Below, piece by piece: positions 2,481-55,305 of a stretch of DNA of 64,000 nt; the stretch's first letter is position 1; each line of letters starts with the position of its first letter. The notes under the pieces were generated by a model that did no database searches, had not been told where the DNA came from, and worked only from the letters and a program-made list of their open reading frames with translations. The position numbers and the translations under genes are program-made. The stretch comes from Trichosphaerium sp. ATCC 40318 (lineage: Eukaryota; Protista; Tubulinea): positions 124,001-188,000 of the forward strand of contig JALMLS010000081.1 in the NCBI GenBank assembly GCA_038496445.1, written 5' to 3'.

Positions 2481-2942
2481 CCTTTTGTTGTTGTTTTGTA
2501 CTATAATACAGTTCTTTGATGAATAATTTGTTATTTTAATTTACTTTATATACATTCAAATTATTTGCTTTTCCTTGCCTTAGTACAATCTGACTGAGTT
2601 CAAAAAAATGCTTGGAACCCATAATCACCTGTAAAAAGTGGTTTAATAGAGTTATTAGGCTAATATCCTTAAACTGCTCAAATACATATTTTCTGTTGTT
2701 TTTGTCTAAAAATGATGATCTCCAAACCACCATGAAACCACACATTGTACCTAAATATACCCAATGCTACATTTATTTTACTTTTTCACATGATTGCCTC
2801 ATTGGGCACAAAGCTGAACAATTAGCAAAAGTGTATAAAAAAGGTAGAAAAGTATTAACAAGCCAATAACTACTTTTTTCCATTGGCTCCTGTTTTGATA
2901 TTCACAAGTGTAAAAAAAAGAAAAATGTTGCTGTATCCTAAT

Positions 2943-4869
2943 CAAGGCTGAAAATAAACAAGGCTTTGCCTTAAATACAAAAGCATTTTTGTAAAATCAG
3001 GCATTAATGGCAAAAATCAGGCATTCAAAAATGGCAATGCCTGATTTTGCAAAGGCAATGGCAACAAAGGCAAAAATCAGGCATTGAAATAAAGCTTTGT
3101 TGGGCATTGCCTTAATTGTTGCAATGCCTTGTTTTTTTAGGCAATGCCTGCTCTAGTTTGTTTATGCATTGCCAGCCTTAAATTTACAGACACCAATTAG
3201 ACATTGTTTGTGTACACATTGTGTGTTAAGGATACATTGGTTTAAGCTAAGTCTCCACCACACCAACAATTCTTAAAGTTTTTTTTTCATTTACTACTGA
3301 TGTTTTATATAGACAATGTCACCATGCATGTAGTATCTTATGGATTCTAATGAAACCACTGCCATTCGAACCACAGCACCCAAATGCACCTACAACAGGA
3401 GTACAGGTACTTTAAACCATTTTTCCAGTCTGTGAAAATATTATTGGTACCAATAATTTGTTACTTTTTTTTCTAGTTGAAGGTTTTTTTTCACATGAAG
3501 GACATTGAAGGTTTTTGTGTTTTGTACTGTACTTTAATAAATGAATCACTATTGTATGCCTATATAAAGCCTTGTTTTATGAGTGAATAGTGCCTGGGTT
3601 ATGCCCAAAAATTGAGGACAAAAATGCCTTATTGTAGCACAAAAAACGAGGCATTATTGGACCAATCAGGGCTGAAACTCAGCTAGGCATTGCCTTAAAA
3701 AATGATGCATATTCCTAACATTTGGCATCGGATGGCAAAATCAAGGCATTTGCATTTGGCATTGCCCAATAAAATAAGGCATTTTTACAAAAAGGCAATG
3801 CCTTCATCAAAAAGGCATTAAAACCAGGCATTTTTTGGCATTGTTTGGCATTGCATAAAATCAGGTAATGCCTTGTATTGCATTTTTTGGCATTGCATAA
3901 AATCAAGTAATGCCCTGTATTGCAAGTACTTTATGCCTTTATTATGCCTTATTTTTTTAAGCATTATATGCCTTGTATTTTAATTCATATATAAGGCATT
4001 GCCTATACTATATCATAGGGACTGATCACTTTAAGGAAGTGTTTTAAGGTAAGTAACAGTCAAACAACTTTTACACTTTTTTTTCCACATCACCTACTGA
4101 CGTTTTATATAGACAGGCATCTAGCGCTCTTAGTAATTGATGAAATTAGACGAAACCACCGCCAAACGAACCGCAGCACCCTATTTCACCTACAACAGTA
4201 GTAGGAGTGAACTCCGCGATATTTCCAGGACCGCGGAATTCTAACACTACAAGGTAAGTTTTTTTTTTCTACACCATCTCATATTTTCTTTAAGGTTTTT
4301 TCAAATGTGGACTTAGGAGTTTTGTGTATTGTATGTGTACTGTATTATAAAATAAATAGTTGTGTTATTACCTGAAAATGCCCTGGTTTATTAAGCACTG
4401 TAGACTATGATAATGCTGTCTTTTTGCCTTCAAAATAAGGCATTGATGCATGAGTTATGCCCTAATTTGAAGGCATAATTCTTTAAAATATGCAGGCAAA
4501 ACCATTGCAATCTTGTGTACCAGATGCAAGCATTTTTCATCAAATATAAGGCATTTTTGGAGCAAAAAATAAGGCATTGCCCTATATTTGCCTTTTTGAA
4601 TGAGGCAAAAACTAGGCATTTTTGTAAAAAATAAGGCATAATTTGGATGAAAATGCCTAGGCATTGTCCAAAAATGCCTTGTTGAGTTTCAGCCCTGTTG
4701 CTTGCTATTTGGCCCAAATATGAGGCCCCAAAGCCCAAAATTACAAAGCAATACCTCCTATTTGCTCTTTTTTTCTGGCAAAAACAAAGCAATTTGGTGC
4801 AAAATAAGGCTGTACTTGGTGGCAAAAAAACCACTTTTCCAAAAAAAGCCTTATTTAGTTTCAGCCTTG
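2943..4869. mobile_element. Non-autonomous TIR DNA transposon (outer copy), TSD AT
   Basis: caaggctgaaaataaacaaggcttt at 2943 is the inverted match (2 mismatches) of aaagccttatttagtttcagccttg ending 4869. AT on both flanks. Dense AGGCA/TGCCT subterminal motifs. Confidence 0.75.
3667..4697. mobile_element. Non-autonomous TIR transposon of the same family, nested in 2943-4869
   Basis: Perfect 15-bp TIR cagggctgaaactca (3667-3681) / tgagtttcagccctg (4683-4697). Internal ~4050-4400 is homologous to ~3260-3600. Flanks AT/TT do not form a perfect TSD. Confidence 0.75.
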
Positions 4870-5027
4870 ATAAAAAGTGCCACCAAAAAAGGAAAACTCA
4901 GGTTTTGTAATAACAAAGAAGAATGAAACAGTGGTGGAATCAGACAAAATACGCGTGCCTAAAATGTGCCATTTGCGTGGAAAATAAACGTGCCCAAAAC
5001 GTGCCATTTGCGTGTTTTAACCATGTT

Positions 5028-5406
5028 CTGTCCTTAATAGAAATTTGGAGAAAAATTCAAAATAAAAAAATTGACAAACTCAAAACTCAACCATCTCACC
5101 CCAAAGCCGATCGCCTCCAATTGTTAACAATAAAACATGTATTTCCACCCAAGTAAGCAGTAGTTAGGTTTGTATCAGCATGGCTCTAAAAGTAGGCGAA
5201 AAAATCTAAAAATACCCAAAAACCAACAATTTCTTGATTTTCCTATTTTTTGTGAATAACTCAGGTCTACTAGTACGAATCCTTTAAAAAACAAAGTATG
5301 GCCCACTATTAGGTACAATGCATGGTTTCGTGGTGGTTTGGGGTTTGGTGTCCCTTTTTAAGGCAAAAATGATAGAAAATAGGTATTTAGGGTAGTTTAA
5401 GGATAT
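5028..5406 (+). repeat. ~379-bp direct repeat, copy 1
   Basis: Near-identical to 7441-7819. Diverged partial copy at ~10310-10455 and inverted partial copy at ~7190-7246. Confidence 0.9.
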
Positions 5407-5407
5407 T

Positions 5408-7042
5408 AGTGCTGTCATAATAACCATAAAACAAAAACCAGTTGACAATATTTTTCCATATATTATCTATTTCCTGTGGAATAAGAAGTGGTCTAGCAAA
5501 ATATAAGATTTGAGATTGAGCATAAGTGCGAAGGATGGAGTGCTTAGCTCTGAGAGTTTTAGCATAGGGTTTCCATGAGTTGAGAGACTTGATAATATTT
5601 TCCAACCCTTTGTGAAAATCAAAAGTGAGAGTTTTATGGGAAAAGAGTGAAAAACCAAGATATTTGTGGACCTAGCTGAAGGCAGTAATTGAGGAATATT
5701 ACCAACCACATTTATTTGAAAACACTTGGCTTGATTTAAAAACAGGCCAGAGGCCTTAGAGAACTTATTAATAAGGTTTAAACAAAAATCAATGTCTTTG
5801 GTGGAGGAAGAAGTGAGCAGAGCGTCATCTGCAAACAGAATTTGTTTTAAAAGTAAAAACGTAGCTTTGGCTCCAGTAACATCTTGACATTGGTTAATCC
5901 TACGATTAAGAGGTTCCAGCATGATGGCAAAAAGAGTTGGTGAAAGAGGATTGCCTTGGCCAGTGCCTCTCTCTACTATGAACATTTTGTTGGAAACAAC
6001 TCCATTAATACAAATAGCTACTTGTATTTGAAGTTGTTTTACCAGGGCAACAGCAATAGTTTTTGGCACTCCAATGTGTATGAGAAGTTTAACTAGAATA
6101 TTGTGAGCACAACTGTCAAAGGCTTTTTTGTTGTCCAAAGGACTGAGAGATAATGGTGTGCCAGAATGCTGATGAGCTTCTACAATTTCCAAGGTGGCTA
6201 TCTGATTGTCAACAATGTCACGACCTGGAATAAACCCATTTTGGTTAGAACTAATAATGGATGGAAAGAAATTGAGTAGCCTGGTATTGATAATCTTCAT
6301 GAAGATTTTGTAATCGTTGTTGAGTAACACTATTGGCCTATAATTGTCAAGTAGGCTGGGATCATTTTTCTTGTATAGCGGACATATAATACCCCTACCA
6401 AACCAATCATGGTTAGAACCTTGCATGATGTCATTGAATAAAGGGCAAAGATGTCTAGCAATAGAAGAACCTAAGTCTTTGTACAAACACATAGATACTC
6501 CATCAGGACCTGGAGCTTTGTTTGATGGCATAGACTTAATGGCATCCAGGATTTCTTTGAGGGTAATAGGTTTTGACATGCTGTTAGAGATACGATCTTT
6601 ACACAAAACATTCCAATAAGATAAAAACTCGTCCATACCTGCTTCATCTCCACTCCAGTTTGCATAAAGGTTTTTCTTATAGTAAAGCAGACCTTTATTG
6701 AGCATGCCAGGAAGGCGAGAGTCCATCGGATGGTTAGCAGAGCGACGAAGCTCCTTAATATGTTGAGACGCTTGCTTGTCTTTGAGGATTTTGGTGAGAT
6801 AAGGTGACGGCGTTTCCTCGCTGGTCACTCGAGACACTTGGGAACACATGGACATGAACTCATGGCGTTCTGCCATGAGTTCTAGGTAACGGGCTTCTTC
6901 TTCTGGCGTCAGGCTGTTGTTGTTGGCTATTTTGAGAGTGTACTCTTTCCAAAATCTAATCCGTTTGTTAAGAAAAATTTTTTGGTTACACTTGGCATCT
7001 CTAATAAGCGCTGCTTTGAGTTCTTTATAGTCCAAAGGATAT
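5408..7042 (-). pseudogene. Truncated non-LTR (L1/Tx1/TRE-like) reverse transcriptase
   Basis: Motifs KAPGPDG, YRPIVLLNNDYK, QNGFIPGR, DNKKAFDS, GQGNPLSP, FADD. Frameshift near 5665 (KYLGF lies in another frame, continuing into ORF 5387-5605). No endonuclease domain; both ends truncated. Confidence 0.9.
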
Positions 7043-7440
7043 GTGGAAAATAAACATGTCCAAAACATGCTCAAAACATGCAATTCACATGCTGTCAGAT
7101 TCCACCACTGTTAAGATTTGCTGTTTCAACACATCAAAGCTACTTTATTTGGCACAAACACTGACATTTCTCTTGAAAAACATATTTTTTATGGAGTTTT
7201 AGATTTTTCCAGTTACTTTTAAAACCATGCTGCTACAAACCTAACAATGCTATTGGCAATATTATCATCAAATGTATATCACCAAATCTGAATCTGAGGC
7301 TACTCTAAAATATTCAATCAATAAGGAAAAATTTCTGTTGCAATAGATGCCCAATCACTTGAAAAATATCTGCAATACAATAATACATAACTGAATAAAG
7401 TTTTAATGTACTTTTTGACAAACACTCTTTTTTAGCTACC

Positions 7441-7819
7441 CTGTCCTTAATAGAAATTTGGAGAAAAATTCAAAATAAAAAAATTGACAAACTCAAAACT
7501 CAACCATCTCACCCCAAAGCCGATCGCCTCCAATCGTCAACAATAAAACATGTATTTTCACCCAAGTAAGCAGTAGTTAGGTTTGTATCAGCATGGCTCT
7601 AAAAGTAGGCGAAAAAATCTAAAAATACCCAAAAACCAACAATTTCTTGATTTTCCTATTTTTCGTGAATAACTCAGGTCTACTAGTACAAATCCTTTAA
7701 AAAACAAAGTATGGCCCACTATTAGGTATGATGCATGGTTTTGTGGTTGTTTGGGGTTCAGTGCCCCTTTTTAAGGCAAAAACGATAGAAAATAGGTATT
7801 TAGGGTAGTTTAAGGATAT
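7441..7819 (+). repeat. ~379-bp direct repeat, copy 2
   Basis: Near-identical to 5028-5406. Many of the differences are at CpG sites. Confidence 0.9.
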
Positions 7820-9000
7820 CTCTATGCGCTGAATAGCTAAAAGAGGATTTCCAATACTCCGAATAGTGTTAAACAACTTTAAACACACTGTAGAAACGCT
7901 ACCTGCAAGTACAGCTCATAATGTTGAGAATAAAAAAAACGGTTTGTGGTTCACACGTGTTTCATATTTTACAAGGTCTAAGTGCTTCAAACATGAACTT
8001 CTTGTAGAGGTAGGGTTTTTATGGCCTCTAAAGTGCAGTTGAACGAAGGTACGGAACCGAAAAACGCTAAATAATGAAAGATGTCTTCAATGGGTTTATA
8101 CTCCTTCGGAATAGTACCACACTCATGTTTACGCGTAAAATAAGATGCCAATCTACTTTAAGCTTCCCAATTAGCTCGTCTAATGTAAATTGTTGATAGA
8201 TCCTAATGAATGGCCTCGTTAGCTGGCGTAATCATAGCTGTGCTTGGGATGCTGTATACACAGGTTTACAGTCTGTTGGTGATAACGTACATTTTTGAAG
8301 CTGCAAGTGGATTTACACGTGCTAGGTGTTTCCTACTCTTTCAGTGCTTTTGAGAGATCCAAGCACAGAAAATAAAGAATTATTCATTAAACAGTTTTTG
8401 GCTGATCTCTATGAACGTTTTCCGAAGGAGAAAAAGAAGATTGAAGCGGCATATATCAAACAACGTTCTGGCATATATTCAACACTATTCAATGTTGATG
8501 CTGTTCATGAGTTTGTGCAACAACAATGTCTTGCTTTTCATGCGACCTATGAGTATGATGTACAATGCAACTGTGAAGGTATTGTGCCCATATTTATAGC
8601 TATAACATCGCATAGAATACCAAACAAAACCTGTGTTTGTTTTTGCACCTAGAAGCGTCCAACACAATTTTGAAGAATGGGTAAACAAGAAAATTGGCAG
8701 AGCTTCAAACTGCAAAACATGTCGCTATGGTGGTTCCAAAGAAATCAAGGCATACAATATCTCAACATTACAGTGCTTACACAATTATAGGCTATTACTT
8801 TGCCGTTGTTACTTACAGTACTGCCAAAGAATGATTTCAATAACATTCCAGAGTTGTTTATGCATAACAAACAGTACTAACATAATTATGGTTTCATTTA
8901 ACTTTACATAGTGAGTGGAAAGCACAGTACATAATTATGTGGCAGCCAAATCCAAAACATTTTACATGTTACGTCAGCAGTAGTGAAATCGGGATTTTGA

Positions 9001-9185
9001 CACGTACAATATACGTACGTGGCACGTACTTTTCACACGTACAATATACGTACGTGGCACGTACTTTTCACACGTACAATATACGTACGTGCCACGTACT
9101 TTTTCACACGTACAATATACGTACGTGCCACGTACTTTTCACACGTACAATATACGTATGTGGCACGTACGTGTTACGTACGTAT
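9001..9185 (+). repeat. 35-bp tandem array (~5 units), cacgtacaatatacgtacgtg(g/c)cacgtacttttca
   Basis: Period 35-36 nt, units starting at 9001, 9036, 9071, 9107. Confidence 0.95.
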
Positions 9186-10608
9186 TAAACAAAATAAGTA
9201 AAATTGTACAAAAAGAACTGTATCAACAGTTTCTACTATGTACATCATAATAAACCATACTATTGAGAAATTGTATTTTATTTAACCATTAATTTGGCAT
9301 GGTATGTTTGTAATGATTTTCCAAATATGTTTTGTTTCCATTGGATCAAGTACTACAGCTGTGTTTCTGATTATGTTATTTGCTGTAACAGTACTGTAAT
9401 CAAGATTTTGGCATATACAAAACCTGTATATGACACATACTTTTGCCTTGTACTGTGACACATACTTTTGACATGTACCTAACCTGCATGTGGTACGTAC
9501 TTACTCAAAGGTATGTTAAAGTATCTGACATTGTCAAACACAACCCAACCCAAACCTACTTTTTTTTTTTTTTTTTCAAAAAAGGTGAGTTTATTGTGCC
9601 AACCCAAACCTACTGATAAAATGGCCTTTTACACTAAAAATTATGTTGATAACAGTTGAAAGGTTCACAAAATGCTTAACTCTGTTAGTTTTTTAAGGAG
9701 AATCAACAAACCACATGATATTTTGGAGATTTCAAAAAATTACTTTCTGCCAGACACACAAATAGCCAGTGTATCCTTTACAATGTCATTGTCTCTTTTT
9801 TGAATGAAACTATGCCAAAGCTATTGGAAGTATGTTTGTCAAACATATCTCACCAAATCTAAATGGATGGTCTGACTATACTTTGAAATATTCATCTAAC
9901 AAAGAAACAGCTATACAAAACAGTTTTGTTATGCATTGTATCTAAATGGCCAACTTTATTTTTTTGAACTATATGTAAAACAACTTGTAAAAAAATGCAT
10001 GCCTGGCCTGTATGTGTGGCATGTACTTTCAAACTGTATCTAATTTGTATGTGGCATGTACTTTTAACATGTACATAAAAAAGGTAAAAAAAATTTGCCC
10101 AAAATTCTGGCATTTGGTAGCCAAAAAATTCAAAAAAAATCTCAAAAAATAACAGACAGCTTGTAGTCGCAAGGTACGAAACCATGTATTATTAATAAAA
10201 GAGGGTGTTTTAGGATTATTAGGGCATTTACTTAAAAACTAGAGGAGAAAACTTAATAAAGTGCAAAATGTAGCTTTTTGCTGTGTTTTGTTGTTTTATT
10301 GCATAACTTAGGTCTCTTTGTACGAACCACTCAGAAAATGTAGCATTAGGTATAATTAGGTACAATGCATGGTTTCATGGTGGTTTGGGGTTCAGTGCAC
10401 CATTTTTAGGCAAAAACGACAGAAAATATGTATTTGGAGTAGTTTAAGGATATTATGGCTTAATAGCTCTATTAAACCACTTTTTAAAGGCGATTATGGG
10501 TTTCAAGCATTTTTCTGAAGTAGTCGTTAAGTTGTGGTGGTTAAGTTGCAGTTGTAGGTTGGTAAGGCATGATGATAGAAATATCTCCTGAAACATGGTC
10601 GTTTAGTG

Positions 10609-10668
10609 GTAATGTATTGTAATGTATTGTAATGTATTGTATTGTAATGTATTGTAATGTATATGTAG
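10609..10668 (+). repeat. (GTAAT/GTATT)n microsatellite
   Basis: Pentamer tandem repeat read directly. Confidence 0.85.
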
Positions 10669-10740
10669 TTGTAATTACCAATAAACCAATCCATCGTTTT
10701 TAGTATTTTTTGTTCAAAACGAGGCAAAATTCCAACTTTT

Positions 10741-11018
10741 GACATGTACAATATACGTACGTGGCACGTACTTTTCACACGTACAATATACGTACGTGGC
10801 ACGTACTTTTCGCACGTACAATATACGTACGTGGCACGTACTTTTCGCACGTACAATATACGTACGTGGCACGTACTTTTCACACGTACAATATACGTAC
10901 GTGCCACGTACTTTTCACACGGATGAAATACGTACGTGGCACGTATTTTGACACGTACAATATACGTACGTGCCACGTACTTTTTCACACGTACAATATA
11001 CGTACTTCACACGTACTT
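10741..11018 (+). repeat. 35-bp tandem array (~8 units), same unit and orientation as 9001-9185
   Basis: Read directly from the sequence. Confidence 0.95.
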
Positions 11019-13451
11019 CCGATTTTACTACTGAGCACCAACAGCGGTTGGTGGTTTGTGGATAACATGAAAAACCCAACTATTGGTGTTAAATCAAACC
11101 CATGTTTGTTTTTTTTGACAAATTAATAGTTGACAACTGTAGGAACAAATACAAAAGTGCATGGTGATGGGTGGAGAGTTCAGCGTGTAATATACAAATG
11201 TGATAATCCATATAAAGTCACTTTGGATGTCAAACATAGTCACAACATTCGCACCACCAAAAGAAGTACTATTCAAATAGACTTGCTTGATGAGCCCAAC
11301 AGTTCTGATTCTATGTTTGTACCCACCAACAACAATAGCAATGAGCATGATGAGGCTTTTTCAGTTGAAAATAAAGAGACTGCTAAAGCTACAATATTTG
11401 TTCCTGGTCCAAAACACAAGAGCATTTCTATTGTTGTTGTACTTGGTAGACAAAGGGCCTTGTGGTTTGAAAAGGCTGTGTATTATGACATTTTTCAATA
11501 TAATAGCTAAGTTGTTCTAGGGCAATAGAAAGTGGATTGTATGGGTGAAGATGACAATTAGTAACAAAACTTGTGAACACGATATGTGGGAAATAGAAAC
11601 AAAAGAAATAACTGGCTTTAAGAGAGCATTTAAAGAATGGAAAGCCCAGCAGGACACTGTTCTAGAAAAGCTTGCAAAAATAGGAATAGGACACTGTAAT
11701 AATCCTTCTCGTATGTATCTAACAACTAGGTTTTGCAGTGGATGCCCTATGTATCGGCAATGGGTTACAATTGATGGAAAAACAAAGCTTGTTACCATTC
11801 CACAGTTTTATTGTACAAAATGCTTTTACAAGTGCCACTAGATTGTATACATTGGTATAGATAATATCCCATACTAAACACTTGTATTTGGGGCTTCTGT
11901 AGTATAGGAGAAGCATTTTGTGTAACTGAGGAAGGCGGGTTACACCTAACTATTTGTTTTAGGTAGAATGCTGTTGTATTTAACTTCTCTACTTGTTTTG
12001 TGAGCCGTACTGAGGTGTTGTCTAAATGTGTTATGTACTTTCATGGTTTGTATCAACGGTAAAATAGCCTATGTGTGATTTGAGGTAACATTTGGCGAGA
12101 TAACACAGCTTTTTGCTTTTTTTGCAAATGTAAAAAAAGGCTAACATCCATGCGCATTTGGATGCATATTTTTTGCATTTTCAGCACCGCCAAAAACAGC
12201 ACGGCAGCACTATAAAAGAACAGCGGAGTTGTTTCCGAACGGTTTTACTTCATTTCAGTGAGCTGGGCTTATTCAGCGCATGGAGATATTATGGCTCAAT
12301 AACTCCATTAAACCCCTTTTTAAAGACGATTATTGGTTTTGAGATTTTTTGCCTAATTAGGTAAGTTCTTGCTTAAGCATTTACAATAAGGCAGGATTGG
12401 TGAAAAAAGCAGGTAAAATGGCAAAAACATGAAGTTGGTTGATATAAACTGGGTATTGTTTATGTTGGAAGTGTGTACCAAACCTCTTTGTAATTGTTAT
12501 GTGTTATGTATCATAATAAACTGTTATTTTCTTTTCCTCTATAAAGTGGTGTTTTATGTGTGCCCAAAACATGTGATATACGTGGCAAATAAACGCCCAA
12601 AATGTGCCCAAAATGTGTCCAAAACGTGCGATTTGCGTGGCCAGCATGTGGAAGAGAAACGTGCCTTTTGTGTGGAAAAAAAACATGTCCAAAACATGTC
12701 CAAAACGTGTCTTTTGCGTGGAAAATAAACATGCCCAAAACATGCCCAAAACATGCGATTCGCGTTCTGTCTGATTCCACCACTGAATGTGAATCAATGC
12801 CAGATGAAGAAAAAATCACAAATAAAATGTTATGGAAAGCTACCAACTGGTTAGCTGAATTCAAGGATATTTGGAAGGATTGGGATGGTTTACTTTTTCC
12901 TCCAAATCTCTCCTACCACTGATTAATCCTCACAATACTCATATTAACAAATGTATAATCCACATATTTATCCAATTTCACCATTGTAGGTAATCTGTAC
13001 ATGGCACATACTTTTGACATGTACTTAATCAGCAGCTAACTTACAGATTAAAACAAATAGCAAATCAAACACAACAAAAATGTTAACCTGGCCAAGATTT
13101 AAGCATCATTTAAAGCCAATTTATCAGTTATAACAAATACAAAATTAAGATTTACACTCCAAAATAGGTAAATTCTTTTGAAAAATCAATACCAAGCTGA
13201 CCTCATAGCAAATCATGGTATTGTGTTGGTAAATGAAAACTGGAAAAACTGCAAAAAGTAGTGAAATGTAAAGGTTAAACTGGAAAAACAAAGCCCTCAT
13301 CCAGGAAACAGTGTATGATGAGGTGTATGTGTTTTGGAATGAGTATAAAATTAAACAAAGCATGTATAAAAAAGTAAATTTGAAACAGGGAATCTTTAAA
13401 TATTTACCTGAATAAACAAATAACAATCAAAAGCTGCAATTCATACTACAA

Positions 13452-54282: not shown

Positions 54283-55305
54283 ATGGAAAAGAAAAAACAA
54301 AAACAAACCCAGTTCAACCAAGTATTCGACCTTGTTTCGCTACCAATTGAGTTAATAGTCCATATTCTCAAACAAGGGACATATACACTTCGTACAGCCC
54401 AAACGTGCATTCTTTTACGAGATATAGTTCACAACCATGTTGGGTATGGTCATATCCATATTAAAAACACAAATGAAGTTCAGATGCTTTCTGGTAGCCC
54501 ATTACTCCACAATACGACTATTGATTTTTTTCGAGAAAAGCCAACAAACGACATTATTGCAGCATTGGCAGGTGTACACACTATCTCCTTGTATGATTGT
54601 CAATCAATAACAGACAATGGCATTGTGGCATTGGCAGGTGTACACACTATCTCCTTGTATGGTTGTCAATCAATAACAGACAATGGCATTGCGGCATTGG
54701 CAGGTGTACACACTATCTCCTTGTATGGTTGTCAATCAATAACAGACAATGGCATTGTGGCATTGGCAGGTGTACATGAGATTGATTTAGCACATACAAA
54801 AGTAACAGATGAAGGCATTGCGGCATTGGCAGGTGTACACACTATCTCCTTGTATGGTTGTCAATCAATAACAGACAATGGCATTGCGGCATTGGCAGGT
54901 GTATATGAGATTGATTTATCACATACAAATGTAACAGATGAAGGCTTGAAGGCATTGGCAGGTGTACATAAGATTGATTTAGCAGGTACAAATGTAACAG
55001 ATTCAGGTATTGCAGCATTGGCAGGTGTACATGTGATTAATTTAGCACATACAAATGTAACAGATGAAGGCTTGAAGGCATTGGCAGGTGTACACACTAT
55101 CTACTTGTATGGTTGTCAATCAATAACAGACAATGGCATTGCGGCATTGGCAGGTGTACATAAGATTAATTAATCACATACAAATGTAACAGATGAAGGT
55201 TTGAAGGCATTGGCAGGTGTACACACTATCTCCTTGCATGGTTGTAAATCAATAACAGACAATGGCATTGCAGCATTGGCAGGTGTACATGATATTGAGT
55301 TTTAA
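54283..55305 (+). CDS. Intronless F-box + leucine-rich-repeat protein with in-frame TAA at 55171-55173
   Basis: LVSLPIELIVHIL F-box followed by 11 LRR units of 22 or 21 aa. Repeats continue in frame past the stop to TAA at 55303-55305. Confidence 0.85.
54562..55290 (+). repeat. Coding tandem array of 66-nt and 63-nt units
   Basis: Near-invariant junction gcattggcaggtgtaca recurs every 63 or 66 nt. Confidence 0.9.

Follow-up and report, generated by a model that had tools for sequence, protein, structure and literature searches.

The locus described here raises the question of how a DNA transposon in a tubulinean protist came to carry a spliced gene for a protease-like protein, and whether that gene is cargo or a part of the transposon's own machinery. 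It lies in Trichosphaerium sp. ATCC 40318 (assembly GCA_038496445.1), on contig JALMLS010000081.1, in a stretch of 64,000 nucleotides (positions 124,001 to 188,000, forward strand) that we call the window and in whose coordinates all features are given. We refer to the transposon as the outer element, as a second transposon is nested inside it. With moderate confidence, we read it as a non-autonomous internal-deletion derivative of a protease-fused clade of piggyBac-like elements that target ATAT and have CTCY ends. A first-pass annotation of this DNA had described a transposon with a protease as cargo. The mobile element with its terminal inverted repeats (TIRs) and the spliced gene stand, whereas separate cargo is doubtful, since the TIR motif and a tail resembling the cysteine-rich domain (CRD) of piggyBac transposases suggest the remnant of a transposase.

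The outer element spans positions 7820-12285 and measures 2,408 bp without the nested 2,056-bp insertion. Its left 16-bp TIR (7820-7835, plus strand) reads CTCTATGCGCTGAATA, and the right TIR (12270-12285), read on the minus strand as CTCCATGCGCTGAATA, is identical to it at 15/16 positions. Both are flanked by an ATAT target-site duplication (7816-7819 and 12286-12289). When the element is removed and one ATAT retained, the joined flanks align across the junction with paralogs on either strand: one at 10334-10514 (plus strand, single ATAT at 10450-10453), which is carried by the nested element, and one at 2606-2786 (minus strand, single ATAT, junction at about 2666). Because the flank-joined sequence matches these two uninterrupted paralogs, the length of the target duplication is fixed at 4 bp. 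An inverted repeat of at least 20 nt with at most one mismatch appeared anywhere in just 1 of 200 shuffles, and the observed one coincides exactly with the empty-site breakpoint. The outer element is a genuine mobile TIR element that inserted at ATAT. The repeat length, the duplication, an empty site near 10449 and a size of about 2.4 kb had all been proposed in the first-pass annotation and are borne out here.

There is one copy of the outer element within the window, and no autonomous partner with the same TIRs was found there. A 20-mer made of the TIR and the target duplication has four matches in metagenomes, none with a partner TIR. These were treated as chance and not as relatives; three lie inside bacterial genes and the fourth is without a long open reading frame (ORF). 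At 12147-12155, 120 nt inside the right TIR, TCCATGCGC / ATGCGCAT repeats the TIR core and is a candidate subterminal binding site.

The nested insertion (8978-11033) is a non-coding CAG-ended DNA transposon whose termini read CAGTAGT...ACTACTG; it made a 2-bp AG duplication and bears 35-bp subterminal arrays on either side. Its removal was tried with 0-3 duplicated bases, and only two preserve the reading frame of the outer element's gene, giving HFTCYVS-TNSGWWFVDN. Both elements lie within an enclosing CAG-ended element of 7.86 kb (4929-12785; CAGTGGTGGAATCAGAC ends, AA duplication), which places the insertions in the order enclosing, outer, nested.

The gene of the outer element is on the plus strand, and a motif-guided model from 8206 to 11841 encodes 440 amino acids without a stop. 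In this model the first exon (8206-8286) has the Cys box WRNHSCAWD, assigned at motif level, with the putative catalytic Cys codon at 8239-8241. The second (8326-8578) covers a predicted helical thumb region with the QQD-box-like DAVHEF (8497-8514) and the first zinc ligands CNC (8566-8574), and the third (8616-8749) a fingers-like region with CKTC (8711-8722). An exon with LPLLL, similar to box 4 of ubiquitin-specific proteases (USPs), follows at 8791-8873. The nested element interrupts the His-box exon, separating KHFTCYV (8912-8977; putative catalytic His at 8958-8960) from GWWFVDN (11036-11085; putative catalytic Asp at 11061-11063). The next exon (11143-11477) encodes the last USP-like strand RVIY, an acidic low-complexity linker with IQIDLLDE (11271-11294), which we take to resemble a SUMO-interacting motif, as well as FVPGP (11397-11411) and VLGRQR. 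The last exon (11521-11841) encodes a beta-beta-alpha segment and a terminal Cys/His finger similar to a piggyBac CRD. The start and the 5' exons are ambiguous: exons and introns may lie within 8021-8222 (for instance introns 8114-8162 and 8185-8222, leading to ...RLIWRNHSCAWD), or translation may start at the ATG at 8206.

Splicing is predicted, and introns 8750-8790 (GC donor, absent from a protein-blind search) and 8874-8911 were picked from the protein motifs. The blind search for the longest spliced frame nevertheless finds four of the model's six introns, and its frame reaches 465 amino acids. Among 150 Markov control sequences the median was 62 and the maximum 236, so that none reached 440, and the reverse strand gave 215. 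Introns of the model are 37-57 nt long (most 37-43) and have a G+C content of 31% versus 38% in exons (p=0.04). Long exons show codon-position bias (pooled p=1e-6; p=0.002 for 8326-8578 and p=2e-5 for 11143-11477). The His-Asp box is restored by the DNA-defined excision of the nested element, independently of any splice choice. We kept 11478-11520 as an intron because the blind search selects it, its branch motif looks like that of the host, its GC content is 26%, and similarity to a transposase core at this place is non-significant; its reading as a deletion junction, in which LWFEKAVYYDIFQYNS would open or close a piggyBac core, was set aside. The frame that the first-pass annotation had spliced by hand is free of stops, and the motifs it quoted are all found at the expected places.

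The C-x-x-D Cys box and the missing Gly-His-Tyr are reminiscent of CYLD and USPL1. Along the modelled protein, Cys12, DAVHEF (residue 85), CNC (108), CKTC (144), LPLLL (160), His200, Asp215 and RVIY (237) keep, at motif level, the USP order of Cys box, QQD box, zinc finger, His box, Asp and last strand; the order of these boxes in USPs, from Cys box to His box and last strand, has been described (PMC4243247, PMC8983731). The spacing is 188 residues from Cys to His and 15 from His to Asp, and in USPL1, where the blocking loops are missing, the corresponding distances are 220 and 16 (PMC8983731). In the model, the putative catalytic His comes just five residues after the preceding strand. It is plausible from these motifs that the outer element encodes a USP-fold cysteine protease, and we infer a product that would act as a Cys-His-Asp zinc-finger isopeptidase on ubiquitin or SUMO conjugates.

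At motif level, the Cys-rich tail of the protein recalls the zinc finger with which piggyBac transposases bind transposon ends. The last 50 residues have the pattern C-x12-C-x2-C, a long loop and C-x2-CF-x3-H-stop, and they terminate the frame, as is usual for CRDs. The 13 residues from the second to the third Cys are also the distance in piggyBat and in the Callosobruchus piggyBac P0006, where TR[YF] likewise comes immediately ahead of the third Cys and the protein closes with CF-x3-H. Such a His/Cys arrangement has been described for piggyBat-type CRDs (PMC8086355). PiggyBac elements have TIRs of 12-19 bp with the terminal motif C[CAT][CAT][TGA][TAG][TGA], and ATAT is among their rare targets (PMC5381638). 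The outer element has TIRs of 16 bp, and their first six bases agree with this motif at 6/6 positions on the left and 5/6 on the right. PiggyBac transposases also carry an acidic disordered linker ahead of the core (PMC9499001), and in the model an acidic linker sits after the protease-like domain. No DDD core (PF13843) was found in a six-frame search of the element and the window with piggyBac-derived hidden Markov models (HMMs; best p=0.12), in keeping with the earlier remark that no transposase is visible and as expected of a non-autonomous copy, and the modelled frame is too full for a transposase core. Since the TTAA target and the DDD core both fail, we do not file the outer element as a canonical piggyBac member but as piggyBac-like.

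As an aside on the finger, the best PDB match pairs part of the tail (GIGHCNN...TTRFCSGCP, 11677-11750) with the MYT1-type C2HC finger of 2cs8 (E=0.027). We rejected it, as the tail has no counterpart of that finger's first two Cys or of its second His. A contig of a giant-virus metagenome-assembled genome (L007, 9855-10880) encodes a piggyBac transposase with a long insertion in its CRD, and this transposase has relatives in metagenomes.

Taken most simply, the protease would be the retained N-terminus of a parent transposase and not separately captured cargo. The transposase gene of the parent would have encoded a USP-, USPL1- or CYLD-like cysteine protease, an acidic linker, the DDD core and a C-terminal zinc finger. 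The deletion copy would have retained its two ends together with the protease exons, the linker, some 80 further residues of uncertain origin and the terminal finger. Its catalytic core would be gone, while the spliced frame stayed open; its 2.4 kb is roughly what might remain after loss of an intron-rich core. Such a copy could have been moved in trans, by cut-and-paste, by a full-length transposase. In the parent, the protease would be tethered to the transposase and may have as its substrate either this transposase or proteins located at the ends of the transposon. There it probably shields the transposase from ubiquitin- or SUMO-dependent removal, or loosens ubiquitin- or SUMO-dependent silencing or repair at the transposon. 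A CAG-ended element later split the gene, and because this insertion parts the putative catalytic His from the Asp, the present copy is probably inactive.

Several findings weigh against this reading. The target is ATAT instead of the canonical piggyBac TTAA. A Repbase subgroup named piggyBacA may have ATAT duplications as well. The tail occupies seven of the eight CRD ligand positions by eye, with the first Cys missing and an 18-residue insertion in the loop, and in eight shuffling tests against four piggyBac C-termini the best p was about 0.05 and the others were non-significant; for these reasons we count the match of the tail to a CRD as resemblance only. An open frame across the deletion would be expected in roughly one case in three. 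All protein searches and fold predictions were run exon by exon, where short exons of a divergent family could escape, and at this scale no UCH or Peptidase_C98 profile or USP fold was matched, and nothing real was found for any domain in sequence searches of Pfam, NCBIfam, PHROGs and the PDB. With phmmer, the last exon had two matches among 1.84 billion protein representatives, both to tandem-repeat ORFs and spurious. A homologue search of the exon proteins gave no candidates, an Atlas search gave leads below 0.9 only, and viral and plasmid collections held no relative. What the first-pass annotation called a USP-like protease keeps its ordered boxes and USPL1-like triad spacing, and these exon-wise searches gave it no profile, sequence or fold match.

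Among the alternatives, one would make the outer element a member of a distinct, amplified and selected family that carries a protease alone, a deubiquitinase or deSUMOylase that also has a zinc finger and a chromodomain, divergent but true, and that counters silencing in trans. We consider this unlikely. It draws on the same open frame of 440-465 amino acids with its intact triad, and on a segment in which a chromodomain-like order can be seen by eye (strand VLGRQR, strand WIVWVK, DMWE, helix F..W). With hhalign as with pairwise alignment, DMWE...FKEWK is paired with NTWE...FQKWR, non-significantly. The CpG observed/expected ratio is 0.84-0.95 in the gene-rich part of the window and 0.23-0.40 in most repeat interiors. 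This depletion is compatible with methylation of the repeats, which the first-pass annotation had inferred; the local depletion agrees with that claim, and depletion alone is not proof of it.

The chromodomain itself failed a direct test. An HMM was built from 16 chromodomains taken from viral and genome contigs, and the two exons that share the segment were scored separately. There was no score for the N-terminal half of the segment, and its C-terminal half reached 1.2 bits (p=0.12). True chromodomains score 32-64 bits on this C-terminal half, in a comparison that is generous to them, as the control set was selected on a KW.G..TWE motif that is absent from the segment. There was no Pfam match to PF00385 in the exons. 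The aromatic cage is not kept: the first position is Ile, WV stands for KW, the third position is Met/Thr and the Trp is one position off. For the last exon, AlphaFold without an alignment predicts strand-strand-helix with a pLDDT of 41, and the fold matches include no chromodomain. The segment can equally be read as the degenerate end of a piggyBac core (R..W..x14..N..x17..F), also non-significantly. We thus treat it as a segment of uncertain origin whose identity as a chromodomain is not supported, and the chromatin-reading role that the first-pass annotation had given it is left without evidence, because there is no Pfam match, the HMM score is not significant and the cage aromatics are missing or off-register.

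The single copy in the window also speaks against an amplified family. A related version, for which the open frame leaves room, also takes the core-less form as an amplified and selected family. Its transposase-derived protein would retain an active SUMO/ubiquitin isopeptidase, a non-canonical chromo-like module and the end-binding finger, and would serve as a sequence-targeted anti-silencer in trans. It appears improbable to us as well, perhaps slightly more so. If true, the core-less protein would be recruited to the ends of its own family and remove silencing marks there.

Less probable still is a Pack-type element, in which piggyBac-like ends surround a captured host gene or captured exons (a divergent USP and other pieces) that have nothing to do with a transposase. 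An intron-bearing gene does lie between the TIRs, and no transposase similarity was detected. The introns of the element, however, are shorter at 37-57 nt than those of the host gene DPYD in the same window (51-69 nt, donors GTAC/GTAA/GTGC), a difference that points to a long stay inside a compact element, and no host-type USP was matched in the databases searched. The chance is slim, too, that the outer element is a non-autonomous Sola1 or another element with a 4-bp AT target and an accessory protease. ATAT agrees with the AWWT duplication that is the hallmark of Sola1 (PMC3845634), as the first-pass annotation had pointed out, but the family described there has TIRs of 28-36 bp that start with GGACC, compared with 16 bp and a CTC start here, and the terminal Cys/His finger favours another superfamily. 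Both differences and the CRD-like tail make Sola1 less likely than a piggyBac-like origin.

Least likely of all, the N-terminal domain would have no USP fold and would owe its motifs to chance in some other Cys/His-rich transposon protein: profile and fold matches are absent, the AlphaFold model of exon 2 alone without an alignment (pLDDT 71) is a generic ferredoxin-like fold, the Atlas feature neighbours are MULE (at lead level only) and two introns were selected to fit motifs, but six USP-type boxes stand in the correct order and spacing, the His-Asp box does not depend on splicing, and a single-sequence model of an 84-residue fragment is uninformative on the whole fold.

Known systems share parts of this arrangement. 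With piggyBac-like elements (PMC5381638, PMC8086355) the outer element shares short TIRs (16 bp) beginning with C-T-C, a 4-bp palindromic duplication of A and T only and an acidic linker, and its terminal Cys/His finger resembles a CRD of the piggyBat/PGBD type. Unlike them it has ATAT and not TTAA, no DDD core, introns, and an N-terminal protease-like domain. With Sola1 it shares the AWWT-compatible duplication, and it differs from the cited family (PMC3845634) in TIR length and terminal bases. Ulp1 and OTU domains are known from Ginger1, Mutator and Helitron elements, where in most cases they form one protein with the transposase and where Ginger1-9_HM adds a PHD reader, and a Trichomonas protein (XP_001314237.1) fuses transposase_11 to Peptidase C19 (PMC2836005); the first-pass annotation was right that such proteases recur in eukaryotic DNA transposons. 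All of these have in common with the outer element, which would work in a similar way, a cysteine protease of the ubiquitin/SUMO family, putative in the outer element, borne by a DNA transposon. However, Ginger1, Mutator and Helitron belong to other superfamilies and carry Ulp1 or OTU, in contrast to a USP-fold-like domain with Cys...His-Asp and a zinc finger, and in Trichomonas the C19 domain is joined to an enzyme of the IS4/IS5 type. USPL1 (peptidase C98; PMC8983731) and divergent USPs of the CYLD type resemble the putative outer-element protease in their compact domain, the His-to-Asp distance (15 versus 16), a four-Cys finger and a very short loop before the His, but sequence similarity is not detectable, and the outer-element protease is transposon-borne. 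A full-text search found no paper linking piggyBac with a ubiquitin or SUMO protease within the literature covered.

Proteases of the ubiquitin/SUMO type have appeared repeatedly in DNA transposons that are not related to each other, and the role given to them is so far a proposal (PMC2836005). If the preferred reading of a protease-fused parent is true, an ATAT-target piggyBac-like clade with a USP-fold domain would extend protease-bearing transposons to a superfamily that is easily assayed in cells, and the role of the protease would be approachable with a Cys-to-Ala mutant. The locus contributes clean filled- and empty-site proof of the ATAT target and a three-level nest that orders the insertions. 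It also contributes a derivative that lacks the core and has an open frame; this derivative would matter if it turned out to be multi-copy and conserved.

The genes of the window are eukaryotic (LIM, RanBP-finger, helicase, leucine-rich repeat (LRR) and DPYD). An intronless LRR gene at 54283-55173 is made of near-identical 63-66-bp repeats. The surroundings of the outer element are rich in repeats. The left flank (7441-7819) is duplicated at 5028-5406 over 379 bp with 96.6% identity. This homology ends two bases past ATAT, for which reason we rejected the duplicate as a clean empty site, and its breakpoint at the insertion site could reflect a transposase-made rearrangement. Inside the enclosing CAG-ended element its right end recurs at 7043-7110, and a truncated fragment of a non-long-terminal-repeat retrotransposon with a reverse transcriptase domain (PF00078, E=5e-31) is embedded in it at 5467-7083 (minus strand). 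Arms at 7186-7245 and 7576-7635, 330 nt apart, form a 60-bp inverted repeat of 82% identity, possibly a small nested element, and an arm recurs at 5163-5222. The 35-bp arrays of the nested element (8995-9185 and 10735-11018) have one orientation at the two ends and are rich in CpG, with an observed/expected ratio of 2.7 in the left array compared with 0.27 in the core. The region 2940-4900 is non-coding, rich in GGCATT/AATGCC motifs and internally repeated, and is probably another non-autonomous element with subterminal arrays.

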